A stretch of DNA of 64,000 nucleotides from Bugula neritina (Eukaryota; Animalia; Bryozoa): NCBI GenBank assembly GCA_964035545.1, contig OZ037769.1, positions 186,001-250,000 on the forward strand. The letters run 5' to 3'. Numbering within the stretch: the first letter of the stretch is position 1; each line of letters starts with the position of its first letter. Under the pieces are notes generated by a model. It saw nothing but the letters and a program-made list of their open reading frames with translations, did no database searches and was not told the origin of the DNA. Positions 35,357-58,261 of the stretch are shown here, one piece after another. The position numbers and the translations under genes are program-made.

Positions 35357-38300
35357 CTACGACACAGTTCTGAGGTAGACCCGTTTACGCAGCGTGTGTA
35401 GAGGCAGCGGGTACTGCGTAGCTGTGGTCTGAGCATGCTTCTTCTCGTATGACATCACCACGTTGTTCACTTCGGTGAGTATCGACAGCAAGTCAGCCTT
35501 GTTATGTAACTTGAGCAGCTGTTCGCAGAGCGCCTGGATGTACCACGACCCCTTTGACTTACTTCTGTAGGCCACGAAACCAGGTACTGTAAGTACACAC
35601 AGCAGAGTAGTATAATATATTATAGCATAGTACAGTATATGATAACACAGTATAGTATATGATAACATAGTACAGTATATGATAACATAGTATAGTATAT
35701 GATAACACAGTATAGTATATGATAACATAGTATAGTATATGATAACAAAGTACAGTATATGATAACATAGTATAGTATATGATAACATAGTATAGTATAT
35801 GATAACATAGTATAGTATATGATGACACAGTATAGTATATGAGGACTACCTGTGGCCAGACCGAGCAGGAAGTCCGGATGCCGCGGGATGTTGGTAACTC
35901 GAGACAATCTGCCAGACGAGTCTGTTTCTAAATCTTCTGTCTGTGCTGAGCCATCAACGGATGGGAAAGATTCCAGAGATTCTACAGATAACACTTGACA
36001 GTGAAATATTCTACAGATAACACTTGACAGTGAGAGATTCTATAGATAACACTTGACAGTGAAACATTCTACAGATAACACTTGACAGTAAAATATTCTA
36101 GAGATAACACTTGACAGTGAGAGATTCTACAGATAACACTTGACAGTGAGATATTCTACAGATAACACAGTTTGACAGTGAAATATTCTACAGATAACAC
36201 TTGACAGTGAAATATTCTACAGATAACACCTACCATCGGTGAATCTGTGACCTTGACATGCCTGGACAAAGAATATTTTAGGTTTGTTTTCCAGAGTGGG
36301 ACATCGTTGTGGTGTAAACCGGGACAGGATGTTGTGTAACGGGATTGGTTGAGAATCAGTTCCTAGAATCTTACCAGCGTCACCATGACTACAGAACACA
36401 AATGTACTATTAGTGTTGCCATAGTTACAGAATGCAAATGTACTAGTGGTTACTAGTGTTGCCATGTTTACAGAACACAAATGTACTAGTGGTTACAAGT
36501 GTTGCCATGACTACAGAACACAAATTAAGAGCTCAATGTGCTGACTACATGTGACGGGGTTGGAATAGCTAAATACTTACGACAGGATACAGCATACGAA
36601 AAGGTCATAGTTGGAGTGATTGAGAGAGGCGTACTCTTTCATCACCTGAGATATCTCGTATGCCGTGAGATTCGTACGAATCTGAACGTCGAAACAGAGT
36701 TTAGTGAAGACTTTAGTGAGTTGAGCTGAAAAAGATAGGATATGAGATTACTTTCTGTCACATGGGATGAAATATACATAATACAGTCTAGGGATGAACC
36801 AGTAAGAAATATACACACTACAGTCTAGGGATGAACCAGTAAGAAATATACATACTACAGTCTAGGGATGAACCAGTAAGAAATATACATGCTACAGTCT
36901 AGGGATGAACCAGTAAGAAATATACATACTACAGTCTAGGGATGAACCAGTAAGAAATATACATGCTACAGTCTAGGGATGAACAAGTAAGAAATATACA
37001 TACTACAGTCTAGGGATGAACCAGTAAGAAATATACATACTACAGTCTAGAGATGAACCGGCCCGAAACTCTAGAGGGACTTTTCCAGAAGAAGATCTGT
37101 CTGTTTGTCTGTCTGTTTGCCTAACTTCGGCAGTTTCAAACTCTACATTGTTGATGATAAGGCAAATCCCTTTCTTTACATGAGATTGCGTAGTTATTGG
37201 GTACACTTGCACTGATGTGGTAGTCAGGGATGCAGAAGGCATAGCTGCAGGAGCTAAAACAGCATTTCTTTTCACAAATCACAATCACTTGGCACGTATT
37301 CAGGTATGTAGGGGATTATTCTTCCCGTGAGGGGGAAATCCACAAAATAGTTCAGTGAAGTATTAACTCTAACTTGAAGGTGCTCAAAGATTGCAGGGAA
37401 TTCAAGTTATCTATGCTATACTTACAGTGTATACTATACTTACAGTGTATACTATACTTACAGTGTATGCTATACTCACAGTGTATACTATACTTACAGT
37501 TCTATACTATACTTACAGTGTATATTATACTTACAGTGTATATTATACTTACAGTTCTATACTATAATACTTACAGTATATATTATACTTACCATCGACA
37601 TAGTCGCACTGTATGCTTATATCTTTTTTAGGCTCAGTCTTACTACAATGCTCATCTACAAAATAGTGATAGAAGTATATTATAATATGTAGAAGTATAT
37701 TATAATATGAAGAAGTATATTATAATATGTAGAAGTATATTATAATATGAAGAAGTATATTATAATATGTAGAAGTATATTATAATATGTATAAATATAT
37801 TACAATATGTAGAAGTATATTATAATATGCAGAAGTATATTATAATATGTAGAAGTATATTATAATATGAAGAAGTATATTATAATATGTAGAAGTATAT
37901 TATAATATGTAGAAGTATATTATAATATGCAGAAGTATATTATAATATGTAGAAGTATATTATAATATGTAGAAGTATATTATAATATGTAGAAGTATAT
38001 TATAATATGAAGAAGTATATTATAATATGAAGAAGTATATTATAATATGAAGAAGTATATTATAATATGAAGAAGTATATTATAATATGAAGAAGTATAT
38101 TATAATATGTAGAAGTATATTATAATATGAAGAAGTATATTATAATATGTAGAAGTATATTATAATATGAAGAAGTATATTATAATATGTAGAAGTATAT
38201 TATAATATGTAGAAGTATATTATAATATGCAGAAGTATATTATAATATGTAGAAGTATATTATAATATGTAGAAGTATATTATAATATGTATAAATATAT

Positions 38301-41065
38301 TACAATATGTAGAAGTATATTACAATATGCAGAAGTATATTATAATATGTAGAAGTATATTATAATATGAAGAAGTATATTATAATATGTAGAAGTATAT
38401 TATAATATGTAGAAGTATATTATAATATGCAGAAGTATATTATAATATGTAGAAGTATATTATAATATGTAGAAGTATATTATAATATGTATAAATATAT
38501 TACAATATGTAGAAGTATATTATAATATGCAGAAGTATATTATAATATGTAGAAGTATATTATAATATGAAGAAGTATATTATAATATGTAGAAGTATAT
38601 TATAATATGAAGAAGTATATTATAATATGAAGAAGTATATTATAATATGAAGAAGTATATTATAATATGTAGAAGTATATTATAATATGAAGAAGTATAT
38701 TATAATATGTAGAAGTATATTATAATATGTAGAAGTATATTATAATATGCAGAAGTATATTATAATATGTAGAAGTATATTATAATATGTAGAAGTATAT
38801 TATAATATGTATAAATATATTACAATATGTAGAAGTATATTATAATATGCAGAAGTATATTATAATATGTAGAAGTATATTATAATATGAAGAAGTATAT
38901 TATAATATGTAGAAGTATATTATAATATGTAGAAGTATATTATAATATGCAGAAGTATATTATAATATGTAGAAGTATATTATAATATGTAGAAGTATAT
39001 TATAATATGTATAAATATATTACAATATGTAGAAGTATATTATAATATGCAGAAGTATATTATAATATGTAGAAGTATATTATAATATGAAGAAGTATAT
39101 TATAATATGTATAAGTATATTATAATATGTAGAAGTATATTATAATATGCAGAAGTATATTATAATATGCAGAAGTATATTATAATATGTAGAAGTATAT
39201 TATAATATGTAGAAGTATATTATAATATGTATAAATATATTACAATATGTAGAAGTATATTATAATATGCAGAAGTATATTATAATATGTAGAAGTATAT
39301 TATAATATGAAGAAGTATATTATAATATGTAGAAGTATATTATAATATGAAGAAGTATATTATAATATGAAGAAGTATATTATAATATGAAGAAGTATAT
39401 TATAATATGTAGAAGTATATTATAATATGAAGAAGTATATTATAATATGTAGAAGTATATTATAATATGTAGAAGTATATTATAATATGCAGAAGTATAT
39501 TATAATATGTAGAAGTATATTATAATATGTAGAAGTATATTATAATATGTATAAATATATTACAATATGTAGAAGTATATTATAATATGCAGAAGTATAT
39601 TATAATATGTAGAAGTATATTATAATATGAAGAAGTATATTATAATATGTATAAATATATTACAATATGCAGAAGTATATTATAATATGTAGAAGTATAT
39701 TATAATATGTATAAATATATTACAATATGTAGAAGTATATTATAATATGCAGAAGTATATTATAATATGAAGAAGTATATTATAATATGAAGAAGTATAT
39801 TATAATATGTATAAATATATTACAATATGCAGAAGTATATTATAATATGTAGAAGTATATTATAATATGAAGAAGTATATTATAATATGTAGAAGTATAT
39901 TATAATATGAAGAAGTATATTATAATATGAAGAAGTATATTATAATATGAAGAAGTATATTATAATATGTAGAAGTATATTATAATATGAAGAAGTATAT
40001 TATAATATGAAGAAGTATATTATAATATGAAGAAGTATATTATAATATGAAGAAGTATATTATAATATGAAGAAGTATATTATAATATGTAGAAGTATAT
40101 TATAATAAGCAGCTACTAACATGTGACTCACCAATGTACTTGCTAACTATCAGGCTGAGTCCCACCTCATCCATCTGCTCCGTGAGTCGCTGCAACTGGA
40201 AGACGTCAGTCGGGCCAATTACTTCCTGTCTCTCGAGGAGAGAGAATAGACTGTAGGCGTCGGTAGCTTCCTCTAGACGAGCCCGGTGAATGCTCATAGA
40301 CGAGCTTCTCATCACTCTTTTCAGCTGCCTCACGTCAGCGGAGATCATCTGCTCTGACAGCTGGTGCAACATCCGTCTGCAACAATACGTCTGCAGTACT
40401 ATACACGTCTGCAACAATACGTCTGCAGTACTATACACGTCTGCAACAATACGTCTGCAGTACTATACACGTCTGCAACAATACGTCTGCAGTACTATAC
40501 ACGTCTGCAGTACTAAACAGACAGTCAATCATCCAATAGGAAGCTTCGTATCACCTGTATGGATTTATTCTGTTCCCATTCTCTTGTATCAATGAATTTA
40601 ATTGGTCGGGTGTTACTCCAATAATCTTCATCAAATCAATTCTCTGGGCTTCAAACAGTAACTCTGCCACAAGTTGTAGCTTCTGTGGGGAAATTTCTCC
40701 GGCAGTTTCTAAAATGCATTGAGATCAGTTTACATTGACCTCTTCGGATCACATAAATTAAGTGATCACAGGAGTGGCTGAGTGGTAGATTAATATTTGT
40801 TTAGTGCAAACAGTACCCTGGGAGATATGAGAAGTAAACATTGCTCAGTGAAGTAATATGCAAGCTCTTGTAACACTAAACAAAGTGATAAATATCAACT
40901 TGACCTCTTACCAAGAGCGTCGAAGAGGTCAAGTGACGAAGTGACTTCTTCCAACTTGTTGGGTCTGATTATATCTTTACACAAGAACTTCAGTACAACC
41001 AAATCATCCTTCGCCAGGCTGTCATCCAGGTGTTTCAACTTTGTGAGGTACGAACGAGGATCCAT
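35357..41065 (-). CDS. CASP8: Caspase-8-like initiator caspase (two DEDs + p20/p10), ~9 exons
   Basis: DED1 (MDPRSYL..LKFLCKD..DLFDAL, RIDL), DED2 (YRRMLHQLSEQM..LFSLLERQEVIG), GICLIINN, CCILSHG, KPKIFFVQACQG, linker LETD|S, DFLLGLATVPGFVAYR, GSWYIQALC, TLRKRVYL. QACQG with tandem DEDs defines the caspase-8/10 type. Confidence 0.92.
35606..35842. repeat. 20-bp intronic minisatellite (GATAACAYAGTAYAGTATAT)
   Basis: ~11 copies in the last CASP8 intron. Confidence 0.93.
35976..36229 (-). repeat. 29-bp array containing CASP8 acceptor (ATCTGTAG|AAT)
   Basis: ~9 copies making up nearly the whole intron; the last copy is the in-frame acceptor. Confidence 0.9.
36782..37059 (-). repeat. 37-bp array = 19 nt CASP8 exon end + GTATGT donor, 8 copies
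   Basis: GGTTCATCYCTAGACTGTA|GTATGTATATTTCTTACT. Confidence 0.93.
37671..40105. repeat. 2.4-kb 20-bp satellite (AGAAGTATATTATAATATGW) in a CASP8 intron
   Basis: ~120 copies with recurring variants. Confidence 0.97.
40374..40513 (-). repeat. 32-bp array containing CASP8 acceptor (TGCAG|ACG)
   Basis: ~4 copies, each with two GCAG|ACG motifs; real junction gttgcag|ACGGATG. Confidence 0.9.
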
Positions 41066-41738
41066 TTTCCTTCCACACAGCTGGAGTTCACAAGAAGTGA
41101 AGAAAAGTTGGCCTAAAATGAACAGATTATAACTAGTGGGGACTAACATTCATTCCTACCAGCTTAAAACCTGTTGTCATCAGGTCTATGTTAATATGAC
41201 AAACAATGTGATGTGATATGTTACACATTAATATACTTTATATCAATCTTATTCACAGTAACATAATACGCACTCACAGCAATATGTATAATATAATTTA
41301 GAAAAACTTAATAATATGACTAGTCCTAGCCATACCCATAGGCCATACTGATACTCATACTCAATACACACGTGATTGTGATTGAGTTTGATTTTGAAAC
41401 ATACTTCTGCTTCACCATAGAGTATAAACTAAAACTATAACTATCGGTGTCACTATCAATATGACTATAGTATTAGTATAACTATAAGTATTCCTATTAG
41501 TATTAGTATTAGTTAATCAATATCATAATCATAACGTAAATGTTATATACTATTACTATTAGTATTAGTGATAGTATTACTATATAGTAATAGTATACTC
41601 ACTTTCACTTTTATCTTGATTTTATCAAACTAATGCTCATTGTGATTATGAACTGCGGTCACTGTTGCTAAAAACTCAAGCAGTGCGATTAGAATGAAAT
41701 GAGTACAACATTTTTGCCCATGACTATAAGTTCAAGTA

Positions 41739-41842: not shown

Positions 41843-43188
41843 GTTTATGACATTTAGACTGTGAATCATAGTATTGATACAAAACAGCACTTCGTAGAAA
41901 AGTTTCAATGACGACCTAATCTATCGATATAATATTATATTGTAGAGGCTATAAACTAAAAAAAGTTCTTATTCAGTGGCACATTGGACTCGCTAATTCT
42001 CAAAAGCAAATAACTCCAAGGTTGTTTTAACGGTTTGCAATAATTTTTCTATGAGTTGTCTACTCGAAAAAGCTTTATATAATATGCCTATCTACTGCTT
42101 GATCAATTGTGGTTTATGAAAATCTACAGATCTTTACTGAAGTATGATGCGCTGCACAACAATTTTAACTAATAGAGCACTAATATGGTTACATATATTA
42201 TGATATCAAAATATAAAACTTACTACAAATGACTTGAGGGTAGTTCTTCTCTACTCCACTTACAACAAGCATGCACTTTAGAACTTAAGTTTCATCATAA
42301 TTTTATGATTAAAGAAAAAAATGAACCATTTGCAGGTGTTCAGAATGATAGTAATTGAAAGATATGGAAAATATTAGCATCTATAAATTGGATGAAACCA
42401 GATTGAGAACAGAGTAGTTGCAAAGCAATACTATGTGTGGAACGTGGACCAACACATGGGAGTTGTCTGCTGTCTTCACACTGAGTTCCAAAAGCCTAAC
42501 GACTCAACCTTGAACTTGTTACACTAGTTCTAATTGATTATTTTGTACATTTCATATAACACCATGTTGAATGGGCACAGGTGGGTAGCTCAATCTGTTT
42601 ACTAACTAAGCAACTGCAATCTTCTTCTTGGCGAAGTGCTTTTCTACCTCCAGGAGTCAAAGATATTGCTGAGAAGTCAGCTATATGCAACATATGATGC
42701 ATAAATTACTTGAAGCCCACATGCTGTAGTCAATATTCTGTGAGTGTTTCATGTATAAGAGAAAAGGGTTAGGTTGTGGTACGTCAATCCTAATATTAGG
42801 TGCAGCTGTAACTAGGTTTAGCCGTTGGTCTGTGACTTTCGTCAGCATTGATCATAAATTTGGTAAGGTGAAGGTCATTTCAAAATAGTGACAGTTGAGA
42901 GTAACTATTCCACAACATCATATTTCATATGATGTAAAACACATACACAAATTATTTTAATAAAAAATACAATATCACAGCAAATTGATTTAAATGAATC
43001 TGAACAGTAAATAAATAGTTTGTATTTAAAACATTCAATAAAGATTATATCACAGTGTAAAGTGGCACTAATAAAAAAATAATATATAATTGAGGAATGT
43101 GATGAAGTTAAAAATAAAAAGTGAAACACTTCGAGTATAGAGCAACTAAACTTTATTACTAAAAGCTTCTGTTTGTAAAAACTAAGCT

Positions 43189-46100
43189 TTAAGTATCAGT
43201 TTGATAGACTGAGATTCTGCTGCATTCGGCCGAGTTGTCCCCAGTGCAAGTTGTGGAGCATTCATGGCTCTCAGTCTGACCATAGCGATTCGGGTCATTC
43301 CCGCAGTAGCAGTCATAATGAGAAACAACTCCCGCATAGTTGAAACCTTTAATTAAATACTGGCAAAGCTAAAATCCTACTCAATGAAATACAGTTTCTA
43401 CGAGAGGCTCAGAAATTTACCTCCCAGCAACGAGAACAGCTTTTAATAAATATAAGGTTACAAGTGAATCACTGGCATAGAAATGGACGATTAAAAAGGT
43501 GTACAAAAAAAGCAATGCATGATTGAAGCAACGTAACTAAACCCTAGCTTGGACTCTTGCTTTCTAACTACCAACAACTGAGAGAGGATTAGCTACCTGA
43601 CTGCCCACATAGACGGATACATTGAGTAACGAAGGCGCTAGTCGTGTCCAAGACAGAGGGGTCGGCATCTGAAAGAGTCTGGAGGGAGATTCTGACCCCC
43701 AGAGCTTTGGGGAGTCCGTCGTAGAAGCAACCTGTAAGCACAGTTTACTGTAACTGTAATATATACTCGATACTGTAACATATACTCAATACTGTAATAT
43801 ATACTAAATACTGTAATATATACTCAATACTGTAATATATACTCGATACTGTAACATATACTCAATACTGTAATATATACTCAATACTGTAATATATACT
43901 CAATACTGTAATATATACTCAATACTGTAATATATACTCAATACTGTAATATATACTCAATACTGTAACATATACTCAATACTGTAATATATACTCAATA
44001 CTGTAACATATACTCAATACTGTAATATATACTAAATACTGTAACATATACTCAATACTGTAATATATACTCAATACTGTAACATATACTCAATACTGTA
44101 ACATATACTAATACTGTAATATATACTCAATACTGTAATATATACTCAATACTGTAATATATACTCAATACTGTAACATATACTCAATACTGTAATATAT
44201 ACTCAATACTGTAGTATATACTCAATACTGTAACATATACTCAATACTGTAACATATACTCAATACTGTAATATATACTCAATACTGTAACATATACTCA
44301 ATACTGTAATATATACTCAATACTGTAACATATACTCAATACTGTAATATATACTCAATACTGTAACATATACTAATACTGCAATATATACTCAATACTG
44401 TAATATATACTCAATACTCTAACATATACTCAATACTGTAACATATACTCAATACTGTAACATATACTCAATACTGTAACATATACTCAATACTGTAATA
44501 TATACTCAATACTCTAACATATACTCAATACTGTAATATATACTCAATACTGTAACATATACTCAATACTGTAACATATACTCAATACTGTAATATATAC
44601 TCAATACTGTAACATATACTCAATACTGTAACATATACTCAATACTCTAACATCTACTCATACGACAACAATGCTAGCTGTGTGCTGTGTGCTGTGTGCT
44701 GGGCGTCTCACCTAGATACTGCGTTCTCCACACTTTAACCCCAGACTTCCTTTCACAGTCCCCGGCGAGGTCCGTCCACCCGGCGTACTCATCTCCACAG
44801 AAACAGCTCGCCTCTCTCAACCCGGCGTAGTTGTATCCTGCAGCATATAGTATAGTATCCTGCAGCATATAGTATAGTATCCTACAGCATATAGTATAGT
44901 ATCCTGCAGCATATAGTATAGTATCCTGCAGCATATAGTACAGTGTAGTGTAGTGTAGTATATAGTATAGTATAGTATAGTATATATAATATAGTGTAGT
45001 ACAGTATAGTATAGTATAGCATAGTATAGTGTAGTATATATAGTATAGTATAGTATAGTATATATAGTATAGTATAGTATAGCATAGTATAGTATAGTAT
45101 AGTATATAGTATAGTATAGTATAGTATATAGTATAGTATAGCATAGTATAGTATAGTATAGTATATAGTATAGTATAGTATAGTATATATAGTATAGTAT
45201 AGTATAGCATAGTATAGTATAGTATAGTATATAGTATAGTATAGTATAGTATATAGTATAGTGTAGTACTTGTACCCTGTAAAATACTTGTAATACAGAG
45301 TAAGAAGTTCATACAATGCAATGCAAATACAATAAAATACAACACAATGCATAACTACGCAAAACACAGCCTGAGAGGCAGCATTACACTATATCAAAGT
45401 ATTATTCTAAACACAGCCTGAGAGACAGCATTATACTATATCAAAGTATTATTCTAAACACAGCCTGAGAGGCAGCATTACACTATATCAAAGTATTATT
45501 CTAAACACAGCCTGAGAGACAGCATTATACTATATCAAAGTATTATTCTAAACACAGCCTGAGAGACAGCATTATACTATATCATAGTATTATTCTAAAC
45601 ACAGCCTGAGAGACAGCATTATACTATATCATAGTATTATTCTAAACACAGCCTGAGAGACAGCATTATACTATATCAAAGTATTATTCTAAACACAGCC
45701 TGAGAGACAGCATTATACTATATCAAAGTATTATTCTAAACACAGCCTGAGAGACAGCATTATACTATATCAAAGTATTATTCTAAACACAGCCTGAGAG
45801 ACAGCATTATACTATATCATAGTATTATTCTAAACACAGCCTGAGAGACAGCATTATACTATATCAAAGTATTGTTCTAAACACAGCCTGAGAGACAGCG
45901 TTATACTATATCAAAGTATTGTTCTAAACACAGCCTGAGAGACAGCATTATACTATATCATAGTATTATTCTAAACACAGCCTGAGAGACAGCATTATAC
46001 TATATCAAAGTATTATTCTAAACACAGCCTGAGAGACAGCATTATACTATATCAAAGTATTATTCTAAACACAGCCTGAGAGACAGCATTATACTATATC

Positions 46101-49100
46101 ATAGTATTATTCTAAACACAGCCTGAGAGGCAGCATTACACTATATCAAAGTATTATTCTAAACACAGCCTGAGAGACAGCATTATACTATATCATAGTA
46201 TTATTCTAAACACAGCCTGAGAGACAGCATTATACTATATCATAGTATTATTCTAAACACAGCCTGAGAGACAGCATTATACTATATCATAGTATTATTC
46301 TAAACACAGCCTGAGAGACAGCATTATACTATATCATAGTATTATTCTAAACACAGCCTGAGAGACAGCATTATACTATATCATAGTATTATTCTAAACA
46401 CAGCCTGAGAGACAGCATTATACTATATCAAAGTATTATTCTAAACACAGCCTGAGAGACAGCATTATACTATATCAAAGTATTATTCTAAACACAGCCT
46501 GAGAGACAGCATTATACTATATCAAAGTATTATTCTAAACACAGCCTGAGAGACAGCATTATACTATATCATAGTATTATTCTAAACACAGCCTGAGAGA
46601 CAGCATTATACTATATCAAAGTATTATTCTAAACACAGCCTGAGAGACAGCATTATACTATATCAAAGTATTATTCTAAACACAACCTGAGAGACAGCAT
46701 TATACTATATCAAAGTATTATTCTAAACACAGCCTGAGAGACAGCATTATACTATATCAAAGTATTATTCTAAACACAGCCTGAGAGACAGCATTATACT
46801 ATATCAAAGTATTATTCTAAACACAGCCTGAGAGACAGCATTATACTATATCAAAGTATTATTCTAAACACAACCTGAGAGACAGCATTATACTATATCA
46901 TAGTATTATTCTAAACACAGCCTGAGAGACAGCATTATACTATATCAAAGTATTATTCTAAACACAGCCTGAGAGACAGCATTATACTATATCATAGTAT
47001 TATTCTAAACACAGCCTGAGAGACAGCATTATACTATATCATAGTATTATTCTAAACACAGCCTGAGAGACAGCATTATACTATATCAAAGTATTATTCT
47101 AAACACAGCCTGAGAGACAGCATTATACTATATCAAAGTATTATTCTAAACACAGCCTGAGAGACAGCATTATACTATATCATAGTATTATTCTAAACAC
47201 AGCCTGAGAGACAGCATTATACTATATCATAGTATTATTCTAAACACAGCCTGAGAGACAGCATTACACTATATCATAGTATTATTCTAAACACAGCCTG
47301 AGAGACAGCATTATACTATATCAAAGTATTATTCTAAACACAGCCTGAGAGACAGCATTATACTATATCAAAGTATTATTCTAAACACAGCCTGAGAGAC
47401 AGCATTATACTATATCAAAGTATTATTCTAAACACAGCCTGAGAGACAGCATTATACTATATCAAAGTATTATTCTAAACACAGAGTGAGAGACAGCATT
47501 ATACTATATCAAAGTATTATTCTAAACACAGCCTGAGAGACAGCATTATACTATATCATAGTATTATTCTAAACACAGCCTGAGAGACAGCATTATACTA
47601 TATCAAAGTATTATTCTAAACACAGCCTGAGAGACAGCATTACACTATATCATAGTATTATTCTAAACACAGCCTGAGAGACAGCATTATACTATATCAA
47701 AGTATTATTCTAAACACAGCCTGAGAGACAGCATTATACTATATCAAAGTATTATTCTAAACACAGCCTGAGAGACAGCATTATACTATATCATAGTATT
47801 ATTCTAAACACAGCCTGAGAGACAGCATTACACTATATCATAGTATTATTCTAAACACAGCCTGAGAGACAGCATTATACTATATCAAAGTATTATTCTA
47901 AACACAGCCTGAGAGACAGCATTATACTATATCAAAGTATTATTCTAAACACAGCCTGAGAGACAGCATTATACTATATCAAAGTATTATTCTAAACACA
48001 GCCTGAGAGACAGCATTATACTATATCAAAGTATTATTCTAAACACAGCCTGAGAGACAGCATTATACTATATCAAAGTATTATTCTAAACACAGCCTGA
48101 GAGACAGCATTATACTATATCAAAGTATTATTCTAAACACAGCCTGAGAGACAGCATTATACTATATCATAGTATTATTCTAAACACAGCCTGAGAGACA
48201 GCATTATACTATATCAAAGTATTATTCTAAACACAGCCTGAGAGACAGCATTATACTATATCATAGTATTATTCTAAACACAGCCTGAGAGACAGCATTA
48301 TACTATATCAAAGTATTATTCTAAACACAGCCTGAGAGACAGCATTATACTATATCAAAGTGTTATTCTAAACACAGCCTGAGAGACAGCATTATACTAT
48401 ATCATAGTATTATTCTAAACACAGCCTGAGAGACAGCATTATACTATATCAAAGTGTTATTCTAAACACAGCCTGAGAGACAGCATTATACTATATCAAA
48501 GTATTATTCTAAACACAGCCTGAGAGACAGCATTATACTACATCAAAGTATTATTCTAAACGCAGAGTGAAGTTGTCTCACCACGGACTCCACAATACTT
48601 CACACAATCCACCTCTTTAATGACAAATCTCTTGCTTATTCCATCCCCAACACCTCTGTAACATCCCAGGTAGGCCAGAGTCTTAGCTGAAACACCGACC
48701 AATCATATTACAGCAGCCGATTCAATGAATAAATGTCAACTAGATGTATTGTATGTTTGAGTGTATATTTATAGCAATACATACGGGCAACTCCGGTTCG
48801 TATAACACTGTTTCTCCAAGTTCCACCACTAGCTAGAGATATGGGAGACGATTGACAGTCAAACTGGGGGCTCTCTATGTACCTGTTAAAGTCATCTCCG
48901 CAGTAACACAAGTAGCCATCTTGTAGGGCGCCGTACATGTACCCTGTCAACACCAGTACATAGTTATACATCTAATAGCACATAGTTATACATCTAATAG
49001 CACATAGTTATACATATAATAGCACATAGTTATATATCTAATAGCACATAGCTATATATCTAATAGCACATAGTTATACATCTAATAGCACATAGTTATA

Positions 49101-52100
49101 CATATAACAGCACATAGTTATACATCTAATAGCGCATAGCTATATATCTACTAGCACATAGTTATATATCTAATAGCACATAGTTATACATCTAATAGCA
49201 CATAGTTATACATATAATAGCACATAGCTACACATCTAATAACACATAGTTATATATCTAATAGCACATAGCTATACATCTAATAGCACATAGTTATACA
49301 TCTAATAGCACATAGCTATACATCTAATAGCACATAGCTACACATCTAATAGCACATAGCTATACATCTAATAGCACATAGCTATACATCTAATAGCACA
49401 TAGCTACACATCTAATAGCACATAGCTATACATCTGATAGCACATAGCTATACATCTCACCTTCCCTCTCGCAAAAGTTCAGACATGTTGGTAGATCTGA
49501 CATGAAATCCGGCAGCCATATTCGATGACTCAGAGAATGAAGTGTAGCGTCTTTGAAGCAGCCTAATGACATCATAAAACCTTATTAGTGTTACACCATA
49601 TAGCTAGTACTGTAGCGTTACACCATATACCCATATAGTTAGTACTGTAGTGTTACACCATATAGTTAGTACTGTAGTGTTACACCATATAGCTAGTACT
49701 GTAGCGTTACACCATATACCCATATAGTTAGTACTGTAGTGTTACACCATATAGTTAGTACTGTAGTGTTACACCATATAGCTAGTACTGTAGCGTTACA
49801 CCATACACCCATATAGTTAGTACTGTAGTGTTACACCATATAGTTAGTACTGTAGTGTTACACCATATAGCTAGTACTGTAGCGTTACACCATACACCCA
49901 TATAGTTAGTACTGTAGCGTTACACCATATAGTTAGTACTGTAGTGTTACACCATACACCCATATAGTTAGTACTGTAGTGTTACACCATATACCCATAT
50001 AGCTAGTACTGTAGCGTTACACCATACACCCATATAGTTAGTACTGTAGTGTTACACCATATACCCATATAGTTAGTGCGGTAGATGGAGTTTATTTTAG
50101 TCCCTCCACAGGTGTTACTCTCATTGGCTGGACACTTCAAGTTACACATGTTGTCTGGATATCCTCCAAAGTATCCGTAAGAGTTACCACAGAGACACTT
50201 TGTTCTGCTCTGTAGCCCAGCGTACTTGAAACCTGCCGCAGGTAAAAAAATTAGTAACACTATGTAGAGTTAGTTCAATAGTTTATTGTTCTGCTCTATC
50301 TAGTATTCAGTAGAGTAGCAGACTTTGACATATTATGACACAATTTGACATATGATGACACATAATGACAAATAATGAGACTTATTGACACAGTTTGATA
50401 CAGTATGACACATAGTGACACAAATTGACAAATCTTGACAGAGTGTGACACCAGACGCACCTCGCATACTACAGTATTCAATGCATCTTCCAACATCATT
50501 GAAATCCCCAAAGTCCACCATGGCTCCATTCAAGTCCCTTTGCCCAGGCTGAACCTCAAAACACCCCAGGTAGCTTCTGTTGCTGAAACCTATAACATGA
50601 AGTTACAGCTACAACTTATCCAACACTCAACATTTTAGCGCAATTCGACTAAAATCACGACAAACATTACCCCTTATCCTTTCCTGAACTTTTTTTAGTA
50701 TTTTATAATTCCATGAAATACTGTACATGCTAGTAAATTCAGCGTTGTCTATTGTTTAGTTTCAGAGTTTACTAAGAATCGCTGTACTACGTACTCAGTT
50801 TCTGCTCTCTACCAGTTAACATACTCTTAGTTATAGAAGATACGAACTATTGAGGTGCTAACCAAAGCTCTTCTCTTGATACACTTCATATCTGTTCGGC
50901 TGCCAGCATTCTTCTCTGTCCTTCTTTACACACATGTAGTTGCAGCTGGCGTCATCGGCCACCCGGCCCTGTCCGTACTGATTGCCGCACGTACAGCGGA
51001 ACTCTGCTAAGGCAGCGTATCTGTACCCTGAGTCATACATATGTTGATATATATTATATTATATACCTTTACTATTACAGTGCGTTAGACAGAGTATATG
51101 TTGATATATATTATATTATATACCTTTACTAATGCAGTGTATTAGACAGAGTATATGTTGATATATATTATATTATATACCTTTACTATTACAGTGTATT
51201 AGACAGAGCAAAGGTTGATTGTAGTCATCCACTGTGATAGGCTCGTTGTTCACATCTCTGGAATATTCCTGGTCTTTATAACATCCAAGATACTCCAGTT
51301 CAACTAAACATATATTCACAGGTATTACACACAGTTACACATAATGCAATAAATCAGTTTATTAGAATATATACATACTTACTACTTACTAGTATATTAG
51401 AATATATACATACTTACTAGTATATTAGAATATATACATACTTACTACTTGGCCATGTTTGTACCTCTTCCTCTGTTTTATGACCTTTAAAAGCAAAGAG
51501 CACATGAGAACACAAATCATAGAGAAGGGCACAGAGTTGCAATATGGAGTTATCATACTCCTATTACTCTGATATATTAGTAATATGGAGTTGTCTCACT
51601 CTTAATACTAACCCGGAATGTCAATTTCATAGACCAAGTAAGTCGCACTACTTCCACAGGAATAATTTCTGCCGGGACAAGGTATTGCGCAATACTTCTC
51701 ATTCAGTATTCTACGTCTTTGGAATTTATCTCCACATGAACACCGTGTGCCTTCTCGCAACGCAATGTAGGAGTAACCTACAAATATGCTACAGTGTGCA
51801 GCTACAATACTAACCCTATATAGCGTGCAGCTACAATACTAACCCTATACAGCGTGCAGCTACAATACTAACCCTATACAGTGTGCAGCTACAATACTAA
51901 CCCTATACAGCGTGCAGCTACAATACTAACTCTATACAGCGTGCAGCTACAATACTAACTCTATACAGCGTGCAGCTAATACTAACTCTATACAGTGTGT
52001 AACTACAATACTAACTCTATACAGTGTGCAGCCACAATACTAACCATACGAAGTACAGTGTGCAGAGCAACTAGATATTCTGTTGTTAATCCCCAAGTTG

Positions 52101-54381
52101 ATGGGCTGACGACTCAGATCTGCATCCTCTGGTGTACCGTCATAACAGCCAATGTATGTGGTGTTCGGGTTATCTGCAGTAACAGCTGTGAATTCTACAA
52201 GTATACACCAGGTAGAGAGTATACACCAGGTAGAGAGTATACACCAGGTAGATAGTATACACCAGGTAGAGAGTATACAGGTAGAGAGTATACACCAGGT
52301 AGAGAGTATACACCAGGTAGAGAGTGTACACCAGGTAGAGAGTGTACACCAGGTAGAGAGTATACAGGTAGAGAGTATACAGGTAGAGAGTGTACACCAG
52401 GTAGAGAGTGTACACCAGGTAGAGAGTATACACCAGGTAGAGAGTTACCTGAAGAGTTGTACACGGAAAGTCTCCCCTCCCCACCACACCTGCCGTACTC
52501 TCCCGTACAGGTAACGTCACACTCACTCGTAGCTCTCTCCAACTTCGGGTTCATCTCGTCTCCACAATAACAACGATTCAGTTGTAGACCGGCAAAGTTG
52601 AAACCTGATCAGTAATATAACTGTTGTATGTGTGCATATATATTACTATATAGTTACATATATAGTAATATATATTACTATGTAAATGTCTATGGTGTAC
52701 ATATATATTACTAGAGTTTAATTTTACTGTTACTAGCATACAAAACCATGTCCTAAAATGTATCTTATTCTAATATGATGTTGCATGTCGCTTTCACCTT
52801 GTTCTGAAATATTTCACTTTGTTCTAAGATATTTTACCTTGTTCATAGCACAGTCTGCTGCATTCATTTGAAGTTAGTTCTAGAGATGATAATATTGGTG
52901 TCTCAATGAAATGATCCAGTATTTTGTCTGTGTAACATCCAACATAACCTTCCTTTGCTGCAAAGTAAAAATAAAAAGTGTATCGTAAATAATCAAGTTT
53001 TATCAAACTAAAACCAATGTGTACAACACACTGCGTACAATCTGTACAACACAATGTTTACAACACACTGTGTACAACACAATGTTTACAACACACTGTG
53101 TACAACACAATGTGTACAACACACTGTGTACAATGTGTACACTGTGTACAATGTGTACAACACACTGTGTACAATGTGTACAACACATTGCATATAATCA
53201 CAACTCCACCAATACAAGCAGAGTACGTTGAACTAGACCTTGTATCTGGTAGACAGAGATATTCCAGAGAGCATACAGAGGGCTGTCACTTCCACAGTAG
53301 CTGTAGTCTCCTGCGCAGGTGAAGTTACAATCTCTTTCATTCAGACTGTGATAGGGCTGTAGTTTGTCTGTACAGGCGCAGTAGTCTCGCATCAGTCCCA
53401 CGTACCGACTAGCAGCTGTAACAACACACAGGTTCTAAGGCTACAAGGTCAAACTACTAACACGTGTGAAGGTTAGTATGTCTATGACGCACTGCACTCA
53501 CTATGTATCAACATTACACACTGTTTCTATCTTTTTATAAGACAAAAATGCAACTTTTAATCCAGGTTGCTAAACTGATTTGCTGACAGCATTCCACACC
53601 CACCATTAGTCTGTGAGCAGAACGCCATGCACTGGGAGACGCTGCCGTTGGACAGCGACATCGCGTGTCCATATCTGAACTCATTTCTTATCATAGAATA
53701 GTTGTAACATCCAAGATAGTCTCTGTCGACTGCAATGTAATTATATCCTGTATATTGAGTAATATAATCATATACTATATACTTGGTAATACGGTATAAT
53801 ATTATATACTATACACTTGGTAATACGGTATAATATTATATACTATACACTTGGTAATACAGTATAATATTATATACTATACACTTGGTAATACAGTATA
53901 ATATTATATACTATAATGCTTACCATTTGCTGAAATGCTTTCTGTTCCACTGGACTCAACTGCAATTATTATGCAAAGTTTTAACAAATCAATTTAAGAC
54001 AAGTAAGATACATTATTTAGTATAATTTGAGTACCCCACGAAATATTCACAGTATACTATTACTATATTATACGTTATGTCAGTTTTGACCTTAACATAT
54101 AGACCCGTACCTCTTGTGTCGTAGACTGAGAGCTGTTCTGCCCCTCCACACATCTGATGTTTATCCCCAACACACTCTATGGAGCACAGTCTACTATCCT
54201 GTTTATAGGGTGGGTATATATAGTTCCCACACTCACATATAGTAGCCTGTAGAGACGCGTAATTGAAACCTACAATAACCAGCTTGGACATTTCCTTGGC
54301 TTTGATATGATATTTCTCTTTTCCATCAAATTTCAGTTTATTAAGGTTATTGAATAACATCTATGTATACATACACACACA

Positions 54382-54461
<80 letters not shown>

Positions 54462-57400
54462 CACATATATATATATACATATACATATATGTATACGTAC
54501 ACATATATGTATATTTATACGTAGTAAGTACACACATATATGTATACATATATGTGTACTTACATGTATATATTTATACATATGTGTATATGTACACGTA
54601 CACACATATGTATACATATATGTGTACTTACATGTATATATTTATACACACCTGAATGCGAACAGAAACCAACACACTGTGTCACTGTATTGTAGCCATT
54701 TTTGAACTCTGTTCGAATTCTATTATATGAGGAGAAAAGCTTCTTGAAGCATCCCTGATAATTCTCCATGCCTACAATAGAAATTAGTGAGTCTACTCTA
54801 CTACCCTACGAGGGTATCTACCCTACCATCCTATGAGGGTCTCTACCCTACTACCCTATGAGGGTCTCTACCCTACTATCCTATGAGGGTCTCTACTATC
54901 CTATGAGGGTCTCTACTCTACTATCCTATGAGGGTCTCTACCCTACTATCCTATGACAGATGAGAGAGATGTGTGAGAGACGCTCACCAAAAGGTGTCCT
55001 GTACATGGAGTTGGTTGTCTTCCCACCACAGCTTTGGTAAAGTCCCAGACATTTATAGCCACACTCGTTGTCTGCCCTTCTTCCAAATGACTTGATAAAG
55101 TTGCTGGTGCAGAAGCATTGAGTTGTGTTCTGTACTCCAGCATAAAAGAACCCTGTGAGAATAATATTCTACGTCAAACATAAACCAACAAACACCCATC
55201 AACACTTCAAACCCACACAGTCCTTCATATCTGAAAACACCTGGTCCCAGGCCAATTTAGATTCTTTAAAACCATTTATAATATCTATTTTTATTTCAGG
55301 TGCCATTTTTTCTACTAATAAAGTGTAACAATATTTTCAATCAACTGTATATATTCATGCAGAAGTATAAACTCACCCTTGTTGGCACAATATTCTACAC
55401 AAGACACCACAACATTGCCTCTACCAAACTCCACAATCCCTTTCTCTGGATAGTCTCTCATTTTATAGCACCCGGCATAGAAGAAGGGTCTTTCTACAGT
55501 TAGAAAAGGGTAGGCTCTTCAGTAAACTACTGGGCCATTCATGTTCAAGTACAGTTCATTGTAATAATAGAATTTAAACATATTGCAAATTCCTTCATTA
55601 CCGTATTTATAATCGGGTGGTACGGAAGTGTGCGCTTCACCTACAAAATAAAAAGTTATTTGTCAAATGGCTTGAACAATGAATAGATTGTTTTTGAAGG
55701 AGTACTTCATGGTTATTCTTTCTTGCATCAACAAATACAAAAATATGGCCAGGTAAATTTACCAACATTCAAAAAATATTGCCAAAATATAATTACAGAG
55801 CTAGTGAGCAAAACTAACATAAAGTATGATGTGTTTAAATTTCTGCTAAAAACGATTAATTGCTCTAACAACTGCTATAAATTACTTTATTAACTGCCAT
55901 AAATTATTCTAATAATCTCTATAAACTAATACATGAATACAAATAAACATCAATATTACACTAGCACACTGGCAACAAGACCAATAGATATCGGTTGCCA
56001 CGAATCAACTACAAATCCTGTGAAAAAGGAAGCAGCTTGCTGGTATATATGTTTGCTGTTACATACTTGAAGGAATATTACTTGGTGAAGGACTGGTAGA
56101 CATGATATCACTTGTCCAGGGAGAAGTTGTCCGCAAACCTGTGACTGAGAAACTGTCCGCTAATAGCAAATAAATACAAATCAACATTACAAGACTCAAT
56201 ACATTTAGTAATACAGTGATAGTCACATTGCCCTGGATAGCTGCTGACTCGAGTGTTTGATCAGTTGACTAGGCTACTAAGAGTTATTGACTAGACTAGT
56301 CACTAGACTCAGTACATCAACTGAAGAACTTAGAATTGCTTGAGTTGACTCAAGTAGTTAATTTACTTTATTCAGATTCAACTTCAGCTAATGGACGTCT
56401 CTCTCTTGAACCAACATATTATAGATTATGATATACAACTACTAAGTCTGGTATTAATCTACTAACTTGTGAGGTAGACGGAGTTGGCTAAATATCCACC
56501 ACATTCATTGCCGTCATCACAACGCATGTCACAAAAACGAGCATCTCCTCTACCATGGCTACCGTAGCTGTCTCCACAGAAACACATAGCTGCCTCTTGT
56601 ATTCCAGCATACTTATACCCTGTGATTGTATAACATTACGTAGCAGTAGTAAAACACTACGTAGCAGTAAAACACTACGCAGCAGTAGTAAGACACTACA
56701 CAGTAGTAAAACACTACACAGTAGTAAGACGCTACACAGCAGTAAAACACTACGCAGTAGTAAAACACTACACAGTAGTAAGACGCTACACAGCAGTAAA
56801 ACACTACACAGTAGTAAGACGCTACACAGCAGTAAGACACTACGCAGTAGTAAAACACTACACAGCAGCAAGAGGAGTAACTTACTAGCCTGTAGGCAGA
56901 AGTTGCCACACGAGTTCACACTTTCCACCCTCCTGGAAGACTCATAGGAGAGATCTCTGGAACCAGATCTGTCTAGATAGCAGCCTACGTAGGTGAAGTG
57001 TGACAGTGACCCTGTTCAACATAATAAGTCAACGTCAGTAAACAAGAACTATTTGTGCGTGCGTGCGTGCGTGTGTGTGTGTGTGCGTGTAGGTAGTATA
57101 GTACAGTATTAAAAGAGGAACTGATTTTTTTGCACAGTCACCTTTGCTATATCCATCTGTAGTAGGAGGTGAAACACTTCTCAGGGGAACACTCAGAATC
57201 GCCTACAGAGAGAAGTGTAGAACACAATTCATTCTCAAAATTATATCAGGAAACAAAACAAAAAAATGAAAAAAATTCTGAGAAACTTTTGTAGCTTCTA
57301 ATAACTTCTGAGAAATGAATTAACTTACAACAACAGCAACGATCACAGCAATGACCTCAACAATAGCTAGTGTGACGGCAGCTGCAATAAGCCATTGAGC

Positions 57401-57784
57401 TCTTCTAACCAGCTTCTTCTTGTAGAATTCCCCGATGCTAGTTTTTCTGGAGGTAAACGCGAAGTAGAGTCCAAAGAAAGCGCAGGGAAGGCAGCAAAAT
57501 GTGGATATGATGCCGGCTATAAACCAGGGTGCTCCAAGACGGGTGCCACCCTGACTATGATGTGCTTGCCCTGAGGGCCCATGAGCAACATACTCATAGC
57601 TTGGATTCTCGTAGCTTAGAGGCTCGTAGCTTAGAGGCTCGTAGCTTGGAGGCTCGTAGCTTGGGGGTCGAGTACCAGGAGCTGCCGAGGCACTCAAGTC
57701 AGTCAGATGTATTGAACTACATGCCAATGAGTCAGATAATGAGCCTGTACCATCCAAAGTGTCCTTTTCATCTATTTTCTCCAT
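43189..57784 (-). CDS. CD225/dispanin (IFITM/PRRT-like) membrane anchor fused to 11 WSC domains (predicted type II membrane protein)
   Basis: Exon 57329-57784 (PPSY repeats, ISTFCCLPC, two hydrophobic segments) ends at a phase-0 GTAAGT donor matching the phase-0 acceptor at 57202. About 27 further phase-1 exons encode 11 WSC units (Y.GCY..C..C..GY.YAGL...C.CG..C..C..CGG..SVY) down to TAA at 43189-43191. The WSC gene is well supported; the fusion is inferred from splice signals. Confidence 0.78.
43750..44660. repeat. 19-bp intronic minisatellite (TACTGTAAYATATACTCAA)
   Basis: ~47 copies; minus strand repeats TTACAG, as in the nearby acceptor. Confidence 0.95.
44833..44940 (-). repeat. 22-bp array containing WSC exon acceptor (GCTGCAG|GATAC)
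   Basis: 5 copies; the last is the in-frame acceptor for GYNYAGL; followed by (TATAG)n to ~45265. Confidence 0.9.
45362..48563. repeat. 3.2-kb 47-bp minisatellite in a WSC intron
   Basis: AAACACAGCCTGAGAGACAGCATTATACTATATCAWAGTATTATTCT x~68. Confidence 0.97.
48958..49456. repeat. 22-bp intronic minisatellite (CATAGYTATACATCTAATAGCA)
   Basis: ~22 copies. Confidence 0.93.
49588..50076 (-). repeat. 28/35-bp array = exon end ACTAACTATATGG + GTATAT donor
   Basis: Real junction ..ACTAACTATATGG|gtatatggtgtaac is reiterated through the intron. Confidence 0.9.
51040..51208 (-). repeat. 57-bp triplication of ~28 nt WSC exon end + donor
   Basis: CTCTGTCTAATACACTGTAATAGTAAAG|GTATATAAT.. with donors at ~51180, 51123, 51066. 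Confidence 0.9.
51788..52044 (-). repeat. 29-bp array starting with the GTTAGT donor
   Basis: Minus unit GTTAGTATTGTAGCTGCACRCTGTATAGR x~9; the first copy is the real donor after ..CTSY. Confidence 0.88.
52200..52445. repeat. 18-bp intronic minisatellite (ACACCAGGTAGAGAGTRT)
   Basis: ~14 copies. Confidence 0.9.
54372..54480. repeat. (GCAC)n/(AC)n/(AT)n compound microsatellite
   Basis: Directly visible. Confidence 0.95.
56638..56870. repeat. 18-bp intronic minisatellite (CAGTAGTAARACACTACA)
   Basis: ~12 copies inside the intron splitting the first WSC domain. Confidence 0.9.
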
Positions 57785-58261
57785 AGCTTACCACTTTCTG
57801 TGTTGGTAGAATGTTTTGAAATGGAAAAAGATAATTTCAACTTCAAATGGCTAATCTAGAAACAAAGCTTTTCTCGACAAGTCCAGCCTGAGTTTATATA
57901 CAGCTGCTTTAACCTAAGTCAGTAAGTGTTTATTTAAAGTGGCAGCATCAAAGTATAGGATTATTACTTAGTCAATAGTTGGTAGTAGCAGCATACAATA
58001 AGCTAGCTATTAGTAGTTACTAATCATTACTAGTTCCAGTTGTTGTTACTTGTTAATAATTACTAAACCAACTATTAACTAACAGCTAGTTTAGTAGTTA
58101 CTAGTAACCGACTAATTTAGTAACTAGTAACTACTAGTTGTTACTAACTGAACTAATAGTAGTAGCTACTAACTAACTCTAAGGACCAAGCTTATCAAAA
58201 TTACATCATGATTATGAAATGTACAATAACAAATACAATACTGAATGCTCAATACCGAATA

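Follow-up and report, generated by a model that had tools for sequence, protein, structure and literature searches.

A probable dispanin-anchored membrane protein with eleven WSC domains, and its gene family, in the bryozoan Bugula neritina

To our knowledge, the characterised dispanins (IFITMs, PRRT1/2, TUSC5, SynDIG1) are without exception small proteins that work in or at the membrane, with hardly any part exposed on its outer side. The best-known member, IFITM3, carries in its cytosolic tail the PPNYEML motif, where a PPxY is overlapped by a YxxL-type motif, and this sequence binds NEDD4 and AP-2. In the small IFITMs, the CD225 anchor has cysteines next to its first hydrophobic segment, and the loop that connects the helices is basic; the chain ends a few residues after helix 2, and the C-terminus is expected outside. 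PRRT1/SynDIG4 and PRRT2 add a long proline-rich cytosolic N-terminus in front of the CD225 domain, have a short tail after the last helix and lack an ectodomain. The PRRT proteins act in neurons, as auxiliary subunits or SNARE regulators. The subject of this work is a gene on the minus strand of a 64,000-nucleotide (nt) stretch of the Bugula neritina genome (contig OZ037769.1, positions 186,001 to 250,000; the whole stretch is called the window, and positions are counted within it), in which a CD225 anchor is probably joined to an array of eleven WSC domains.

Yeast Wsc1-3, KREMEN1/2 and polycystin-1 present WSC domains on the cell surface for sensing or binding; a structure paper reportedly exists for yeast Wsc1. 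These proteins are type I or polytopic, possess a signal peptide and a single WSC domain each, and have no dispanin anchor. The Golgi proteins WSCD1 and WSCD2 are type II, with the WSC domains on the luminal side, but they rely on a plain single-pass signal anchor, contain two WSC domains and a sulfotransferase domain, and are devoid of CD225 and of the PPxY tail. Tandem WSC domains for multivalent glycan binding occur in secreted fungal lectins (e.g., the beta-glucan-binding WSC3 of Serendipita indica), which comprise three domains without a membrane anchor. Carbohydrate binding by WSC is known for some fungal WSC proteins only. The Bugula gene shares the anchor plan and the overlapping tail motif of IFITM3 (PPSYEPL here, PPNYEML there), the proline-rich tail preceding CD225 in PRRT proteins, and, in its predicted topology, the surface or luminal WSC domains of the other group.

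The best-supported gene model begins with a TATA box at ~57900 and an ATG at 57784 and extends to a stop at 43189. It was built by linking open segments according to phase and splice-site quality, giving 26 exons with a summed length of 3,696 nt. The predicted product has 1,231 amino acids (aa), or 1,212 aa if the doubtful exon 5 is skipped and 25 exons remain; the length of ~1,400 aa given in the earlier sequence-only reading of this DNA was an overestimate. The first exon corresponds to an open reading frame (ORF) whose stop is a TAA within GTAAGTTAA, and the GT at 57328 of that string is a phase-0 donor. The acceptor ctctgtag/G, found 126 nt past the donor, opens a stop-free phase-0 exon starting at 57202, which exits in phase 1 and is compatible with the first WSC exon at 57011. 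Both the stop just past a phase-0 GTAAGT donor and the acceptor, as reported before, are borne out in the sequence. Exon 1 has the phases 0-0, exon 2 has 0-1, and all later exons are 1-1; because exon 1 ends in phase 0 and the WSC exons are 1-1, only a 0-to-1 linker can bridge them. The uniform 1-1 phases are the signature of a shuffled domain array.

No other start for the array was found. The first WSC exon begins in phase 1, exon 2 contains no ATG, and inspection by eye of the three frames between 57328 and 57012 revealed no ATG exon with a hydrophobic leader. A conserved TATA box is located only upstream of the CD225 exon, and an AATAAA follows the last WSC exon. The earlier statement that the array has no separate signal peptide or C-terminal anchor of its own stands.

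The donor at the end of exon 1 is also a family property. In 21/21 CD225 exons of the family on chromosome 5, the alignment places a GT in phase 0 at one shared site just behind helix 2, and 18 of these donors also have G at +5 and T at +6. The exons are just 14-26% identical to the domain in the window, and since the donor is conserved throughout despite this divergence, it appears to be held by selection; the CD225 exon would therefore be internal and not the end of a small gene. The CD225 anchor and the eleven WSC domains thus probably belong to one gene, whose product would place the N-terminus on the cytosolic side of the membrane and the C-terminus on the outer side. Within this particular gene, we infer the splice join. 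The type II architecture of CD225 anchor, linker and eleven WSC domains, as proposed earlier, is supported as the only gene model consistent with the findings, through the phases, the lack of another start, the positions of the TATA box and poly(A) signal, and the donor in all 21 exons; the length proposed with it did not hold, and exon 2 shows no constraint on its amino acids. The features of the locus are collected in Table 1.

Table 1. Predicted features of the dispanin-WSC gene (window positions)
Feature	Position	Strand	Remarks
TATATAA box	57894..57900	-	~110 nt 5′ of the ATG; block fully conserved in L014
Exon 1 part 1: cytosolic N-terminal tail (predicted)	57545..57784	-	five xSYE repeats, two PPSY, YEPL
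Exon 1 part 2: CD225/dispanin domain	57329..57544	-	helix 1 with FCCLPC, basic loop, helix 2; phase-0 GTAAGT donor at end
Intron 1	57203..57328	-	126 nt; retention would add V-S, then stop
Exon 2: juxtamembrane linker	57142..57202	-	61 nt; phase 0 in, 1 out
WSC1	56467..57011	-	exons 57011-56886 (N half) and 56619-56467 (C half)
Exon 5: doubtful Ser/Thr/Pro linker	56082..56138	-	good splice sites in the window
Exon 6: linker	55602..55640	-	39 nt; zero amino-acid changes against L014
WSC2	54988..55493	-	exons 55493-55377 and 55152-54988
WSC3	54111..54771	-	exons 54771-54652 and 54269-54111
WSC4	53239..53729	-	exons 53729-53604 and 53415-53239
WSC5	52449..52957	-	exons 52957-52838 and 52604-52449
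WSC6	51613..52173	-	exons 52173-52045 and 51777-51613
WSC7	50863..51303	-	exons 51303-51181 and 51027-50863
WSC8	50065..50589	-	exons 50589-50461 and 50232-50065
WSC9	48785..49562	-	exons 49562-49461 and 48943-48785; C half without last two cysteines
WSC10	44712..48686	-	exons 48686-48582 and 44837-44712; C half without last two cysteines
WSC11	43189..43731	-	exons 43731-43597 and 43346-43189; stop TAA 43191-43189
AATAAA poly(A) signal	~43152..43157	-	by eye; ~35 nt past the stop

Database and profile searches were run on single exons, and the WSC halves were scanned separately, as every one of the eleven WSC domains is interrupted by an intron at the same spot, near profile position 36. The Pfam WSC profile (PF01822) matches the C-terminal half-exons in all eleven cases (positions ~36-82, expect value (E) 7.5e-10 to 7e-4), five of which exceed the cut-off of 27.8 bits unaided, and the 11-WSC array described from the sequence alone is thereby upheld. 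The N-terminal halves match in 5/11 cases, at positions 1-36 and weakly (E ~0.01). The C half of WSC11, the last domain, matches well (E 1e-7). Nine domains display a 3+5 cysteine pattern, and WSC9 and WSC10 a 3+3 pattern.

The product of exon 1 starts with an acidic part bearing five xSYE repeats, including two PPSY (PPxY) motifs and one YEPL (YxxL). Hydrophobic segments are situated at residues 87-110 (with FCCLPC) and 130-152, and the loop between them (residues 111-129) contains seven K/R versus one D/E, a net charge of +6. The 154-aa ORF at 57784-57320, with its stop and its dispanin features, is thus present as described before, and it follows the CD225 structural plan of two hydrophobic helices, a short basic loop and cysteines at helix 1. 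The Pfam CD225 profile (PF04505) recognizes it weakly, scoring 19.2 bits (E 1.3e-3) over the whole ORF and 21.7 bits when only the domain part is taken, under the curated cut-off of 27.1; the domain of this gene is the most divergent within the family. Recognition through the family is much clearer. The profile matches 21/21 family exons at E <=0.01 (best 8.9e-10), and hhalign aligns the family profile to the canonical CD225 exons of the same genome over 65 columns with 99% probability (E 2.6e-18). The top match of the family profile in the PDB is PRRT1 (9zks_M, residues 224-289 of 306, E 6.4e-6), and the closest ESM Atlas clusters are CD225 in every case. AlphaFold models the 74-aa anchor as a helix-turn-helix hairpin, with low confidence (mean predicted local distance difference test score, pLDDT, 68). 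The exon 1 domain may thus be regarded as a divergent CD225/dispanin domain, whose homology is well supported via the family rather than the single sequence. The earlier label "CD225/IFITM-like" is kept in its first half; "IFITM-like" is too narrow, as the top solved relative is PRRT1. The typical size of CD225 proteins would be exceeded as well, because more than 1,050 residues follow helix 2 in the spliced model, in contrast to the few residues of the IFITMs.

Evidence for selection on the gene comes from an orthologous contig. The sole relative of exon 1 in a word-indexed database search is P0001, which derives from the Joint Genome Institute (JGI) metagenome contigs L014 and L015, both taken to be Bugula-derived. 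L014 is colinear with positions 64000-52200 of the window at 75-88% identity. Its full-length match in the present genome is this locus only (82% identity), for which reason it is considered the orthologue from a divergent lineage, and its interpretation as a paralogue was rejected. All exons compared with L014 are open. The ten WSC half-exons compared have kept all splice sites and differ by a single indel of 6 nt; pooled, they give a synonymous divergence (Ks) of 0.243, a nonsynonymous divergence (Ka) of 0.045 and a Ka/Ks of 0.19. The introns are 74-93% identical, most of them with indels. For the CD225 part Ka/Ks is 0.26, and for the tail (57545-57784) it is 0.62; the two tails also differ in their number of repeats, by 90 nt and in frame. 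In L014, neither splice site of exon 5 (56138-56082) is preserved and 105 nt are inserted, so this segment may not be an exon. The continuity through 56081-55641 assumed in the earlier reading relied on it and loses this support; however, exon 4 can splice straight to exon 6 with the phase unchanged.

L014 also contains an extra 181-nt phase-0 intron (GTAACA...TTATAG; L014:6149-6329) together with ~14 codons just 5′ of the CD225 domain. The window is continuous at 57544/57545, and the paralogues carry an intron at the corresponding exon boundary; the 181-nt intron is, judging from these alignments, a presence/absence difference between close lineages. A 20-nt tandem duplication at L014:6738-6777 (versus 57142-57161 of the window) copies the end of exon 2 with its donor. 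It leaves two candidate donors in L014, only the first of which preserves the frame.

The exon plan recurs in the same genome. Genome-wide, 58 CD225-like matches were found, and on chromosome 5 (C5) WSC matches are interspersed among those near the window and those at 3.60-3.82 Mb. When 200 kb of the C5:3.60-3.82 Mb cluster were scanned with profiles built from this gene, 16 of 19 CD225 exons turned out to be followed by 1-4 WSC domains on the same strand. Near the window, the same holds for 3/3 exons, including both neighbours at C5:260-275 kb. On this genomic evidence, the loci make up what is apparently a lineage-specific family of ~20 genes on chromosome 5, with a WSC count per gene of 1-11, and the present locus is the largest member. 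The common plan consists of a PPxY tail, a phase 0-0 CD225 exon, a 0-to-1 linker and phase 1-1 WSC half-exons. Neighbouring gene B shows the same order of CD225 exon, short phase 0-to-1 linker with a hydrophobic start, and WSC. In three paralogues of the cluster, such a linker begins hydrophobically, ends with GTAAGT and varies by in-frame indels only (21 and 3 nt). A PPxY-rich ATG exon lies upstream in 14/19 paralogues scanned. The exon plan of these genes (C5:260-275 kb and C5:3.60-3.82 Mb) is the same as here, but they carry 1-4 WSC domains in place of eleven, and their CD225 exon is preceded by an intron absent from this gene.

Several units of the cluster deviate from the plan. The CD225 exons at C5:3622423, 3632483 and 3704954 have no detectable WSC exon before the next unit, and the donor is kept at 3632483 and 3704954, the two checked. 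At C5:3785309-3794600, four WSC C-half exons occur with no CD225 exon detected. Truncation of copies, or divergence of the anchor, may account for the WSC-less units and the CD225-less block. Very large WSC arrays without a nearby CD225 match are located at C4:23.06-23.08 Mb, C3:15.15-15.9 Mb and C8:5.81-5.89 Mb, and WSC has therefore expanded in several unrelated gene families of this genome.

A number of observations weigh against the joining of anchor and array in one protein. The ORF of exon 1 has its own stop two codons past the donor, which makes a stand-alone 154-aa product possible, and tandem duplication of a two-gene unit would likewise keep CD225 and WSC exons adjacent. Exon 2 has kept its length, phase and splice sites against L014, but it accumulated 8 non-synonymous versus 1 synonymous changes (Ka/Ks 3.2), and its conservation of 85% is below that of the flanking introns; its frame looks constrained, its sequence does not. 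A phmmer search with exon 1 against 1.84 billion representatives returned four matches, none fused: the genomic orthologue, two small unrelated dispanin-like proteins and one low-complexity sequence. The word-indexed search yielded the genomic P0001 alone, and a search with the N-terminal exon of a paralogue gave genomic JGI fragments only; there was no transcript-derived or annotated CD225-WSC fused protein among these search results. For the distal half (WSC6-11), two metagenome scans provided no usable orthologous sequence. The scan with the WSC9 C half found no relative, and the one with the WSC8 C half found WSC exons of 46-50% identity, carried by short contigs that come from other organisms and contain no CD225 exon. 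Finally, WSC9 and WSC10 have each lost two cysteines.

The possibility of two genes, i.e., a stand-alone 154-aa dispanin ending with the TAA at 57320-57322 and a separate WSC-array gene with its own signal-peptide exon, draws on the completeness of the ORF, with ATG, stop and TATA box, on the lack of coding constraint in exon 2, and on the separability of the two parts in DNA, seen in the three CD225-only units and the CD225-less block of four WSC C-halves in the cluster. This arrangement is nevertheless unlikely. A terminal exon has no need for the donor that follows helix 2 in 21/21 diverged paralogues, the phase-1 beginning of the first WSC exon and the ATG-less exon 2 offer no start, no leader-encoding ATG exon was seen by eye at 57328-57012, and the linker exon of the paralogues carries in-frame indels only. 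Tandem duplication by itself explains neither why a donor is retained where the first gene would end nor why the second gene would lack a start.

A single locus may also give two products, as suggested in the earlier reading, namely the spliced receptor and, by retention of intron 1, a short IFITM-like protein. Paralogue frames run 1-45 codons beyond the donor with no conserved stop, and no AATAAA was seen by eye in intron 1, so the short form would need the distant 3′ end or would become a decay target; the second product is improbable, even though read-through of the intron adds just two codons before a stop, L014 has exactly the same donor-plus-stop string GTAAGTTAA, and intron 1 is unusually conserved (92.8%). 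Very improbable is a decaying gene, in which the proximal part is intact and WSC9-11 are eroding, with an ectodomain partly non-functional or a shorter transcript. Such decay would explain the shortened Pfam matches (only up to position 70) and missing cysteines in the C halves of WSC9 and WSC10, the 3.2-kb minisatellite in the WSC10 intron, and the absence of orthologous sequence for the distal part from the metagenome scans. On the other hand, all 26 model exons are open, in phase and equipped with usable splice sites up to the stop and AATAAA, WSC11 remains a good domain, and the same two cysteines are gone in both variants, which looks like the loss of one disulfide pair rather than decay.

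Under the preferred one-gene reading, the product is most likely a binding receptor of type II orientation, located at the surface or in endosomes, whose cytosolic tail bears PPxY. Its topology with the N-terminus in and the C-terminus out is inferred by applying the positive-inside rule and by comparison with IFITM3 and PRRT proteins; because the basic loop would be cytosolic, the part after helix 2 would be outside or luminal. The WSC part contains 84 cysteines and 10 N-glycosylation sequons, and exon 1 has no sequon, a distribution that fits the same placement. The protein would begin with an acidic, Pro/Tyr-rich cytosolic tail, whose PPxY motifs would allow WW-domain ubiquitin ligases to dock, as they do in IFITM3. 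The CD225 anchor would follow, with helix 1 embedded in the membrane and bearing cysteines that can be palmitoylated, a loop that is basic and cytosolic, and helix 2 spanning the membrane. Next would come a short, fast-evolving stalk. The eleven disulfide-rich WSC domains with their sequons would face the outside or the endosomal lumen. By analogy to IFITM3, PPxY and YxxL may recruit NEDD4-type ligases and the endocytic machinery, so that ubiquitin-dependent endocytosis would set the surface level of the receptor. The chain of WSC domains may bind glycans or other surface ligands multivalently, by analogy to fungal WSC lectins, yeast Wsc sensors and KREMEN; the glycan-sensing role put forward earlier is conjectural to the same degree.

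A bolder and rather doubtful extension would see in these genes pattern-recognition receptors of a new class, acting at the surface or in endosomes, in which the dispanin serves as a signal-anchor for WSC lectin arrays and PPxY-driven ubiquitination and endocytosis deliver the ligand (microbial or symbiont glycans, virus particles). The expansion to ~20 genes would then represent diversification of recognition, perhaps linked to the management of the bryostatin-producing symbiont or to self and non-self contacts of colonies. We know of no interferon system in bryozoans.

A full-text literature search recovered no paper containing both CD225 and "WSC domain", and the single paper with dispanin and WSC was unrelated. 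As far as the genomic sequence can tell, the architecture brings two known domains together in a new way, within a lineage-specific family; the novelty claimed earlier remains for the combination but not for this locus alone, given the ~20 genes that share it. The locus itself contributes the largest member, the orthologue-based selection test, the donor in 21/21 exons and the intron presence/absence. If the reading is true, a dispanin anchoring a ligand-binding ectodomain of >1,000 residues widens the known roles of the fold, and it offers a natural test of dispanin topology, as WSC disulfides require a luminal or extracellular location. The WSC domain, which has been investigated chiefly in fungi, would also gain an animal membrane-bound multi-WSC protein. 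The PPxY tail common with IFITM3 suggests that ubiquitin-controlled trafficking is old in the family, and bryozoan biology would gain a candidate family of recognition receptors.

Downstream of the gene, ~2 kb further on the same strand, the neighbour at 36217-41149 (minus) is a caspase-8-like gene beginning near 41150, in which a caspase domain (E 2.6e-13) comes after two death-effector domains (E 1.7e-10 and 1.9e-11). A C-terminal membrane anchor beyond WSC11 was considered and rejected, since the stop and AATAAA are followed by this gene on the strand; a further exon supplying such an anchor is impossible because of its start near 41150. Upstream, the segment 58247-59596 of the window, ~1.35 kb long and adjoining the promoter region on its upstream side, starts at a long poly-C run and has no counterpart in L014, which reflects either an insertion here or a deletion there.

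The two small dispanin-like proteins matched by exon 1 (P0003 and P0004, E ~1e-4, mainly through the repeat tract) are probably bacterial. Each has a zinc-ribbon-like CxxC pair at the N-terminus and a tract of P-x-Y-E/Q repeats, and ends in two helices that resemble those of dispanins.

The intron splitting WSC10 has a length of 3.7 kb and contains a 47-bp minisatellite in 68 copies with 97% identity (45362-48565). Minisatellites occupy many other introns of the gene as well (43753-44660, 48958-49457, 49586-50084, 52200-52445 and 56644-56865), and long repeat arrays are likewise present in the introns of the paralogues.

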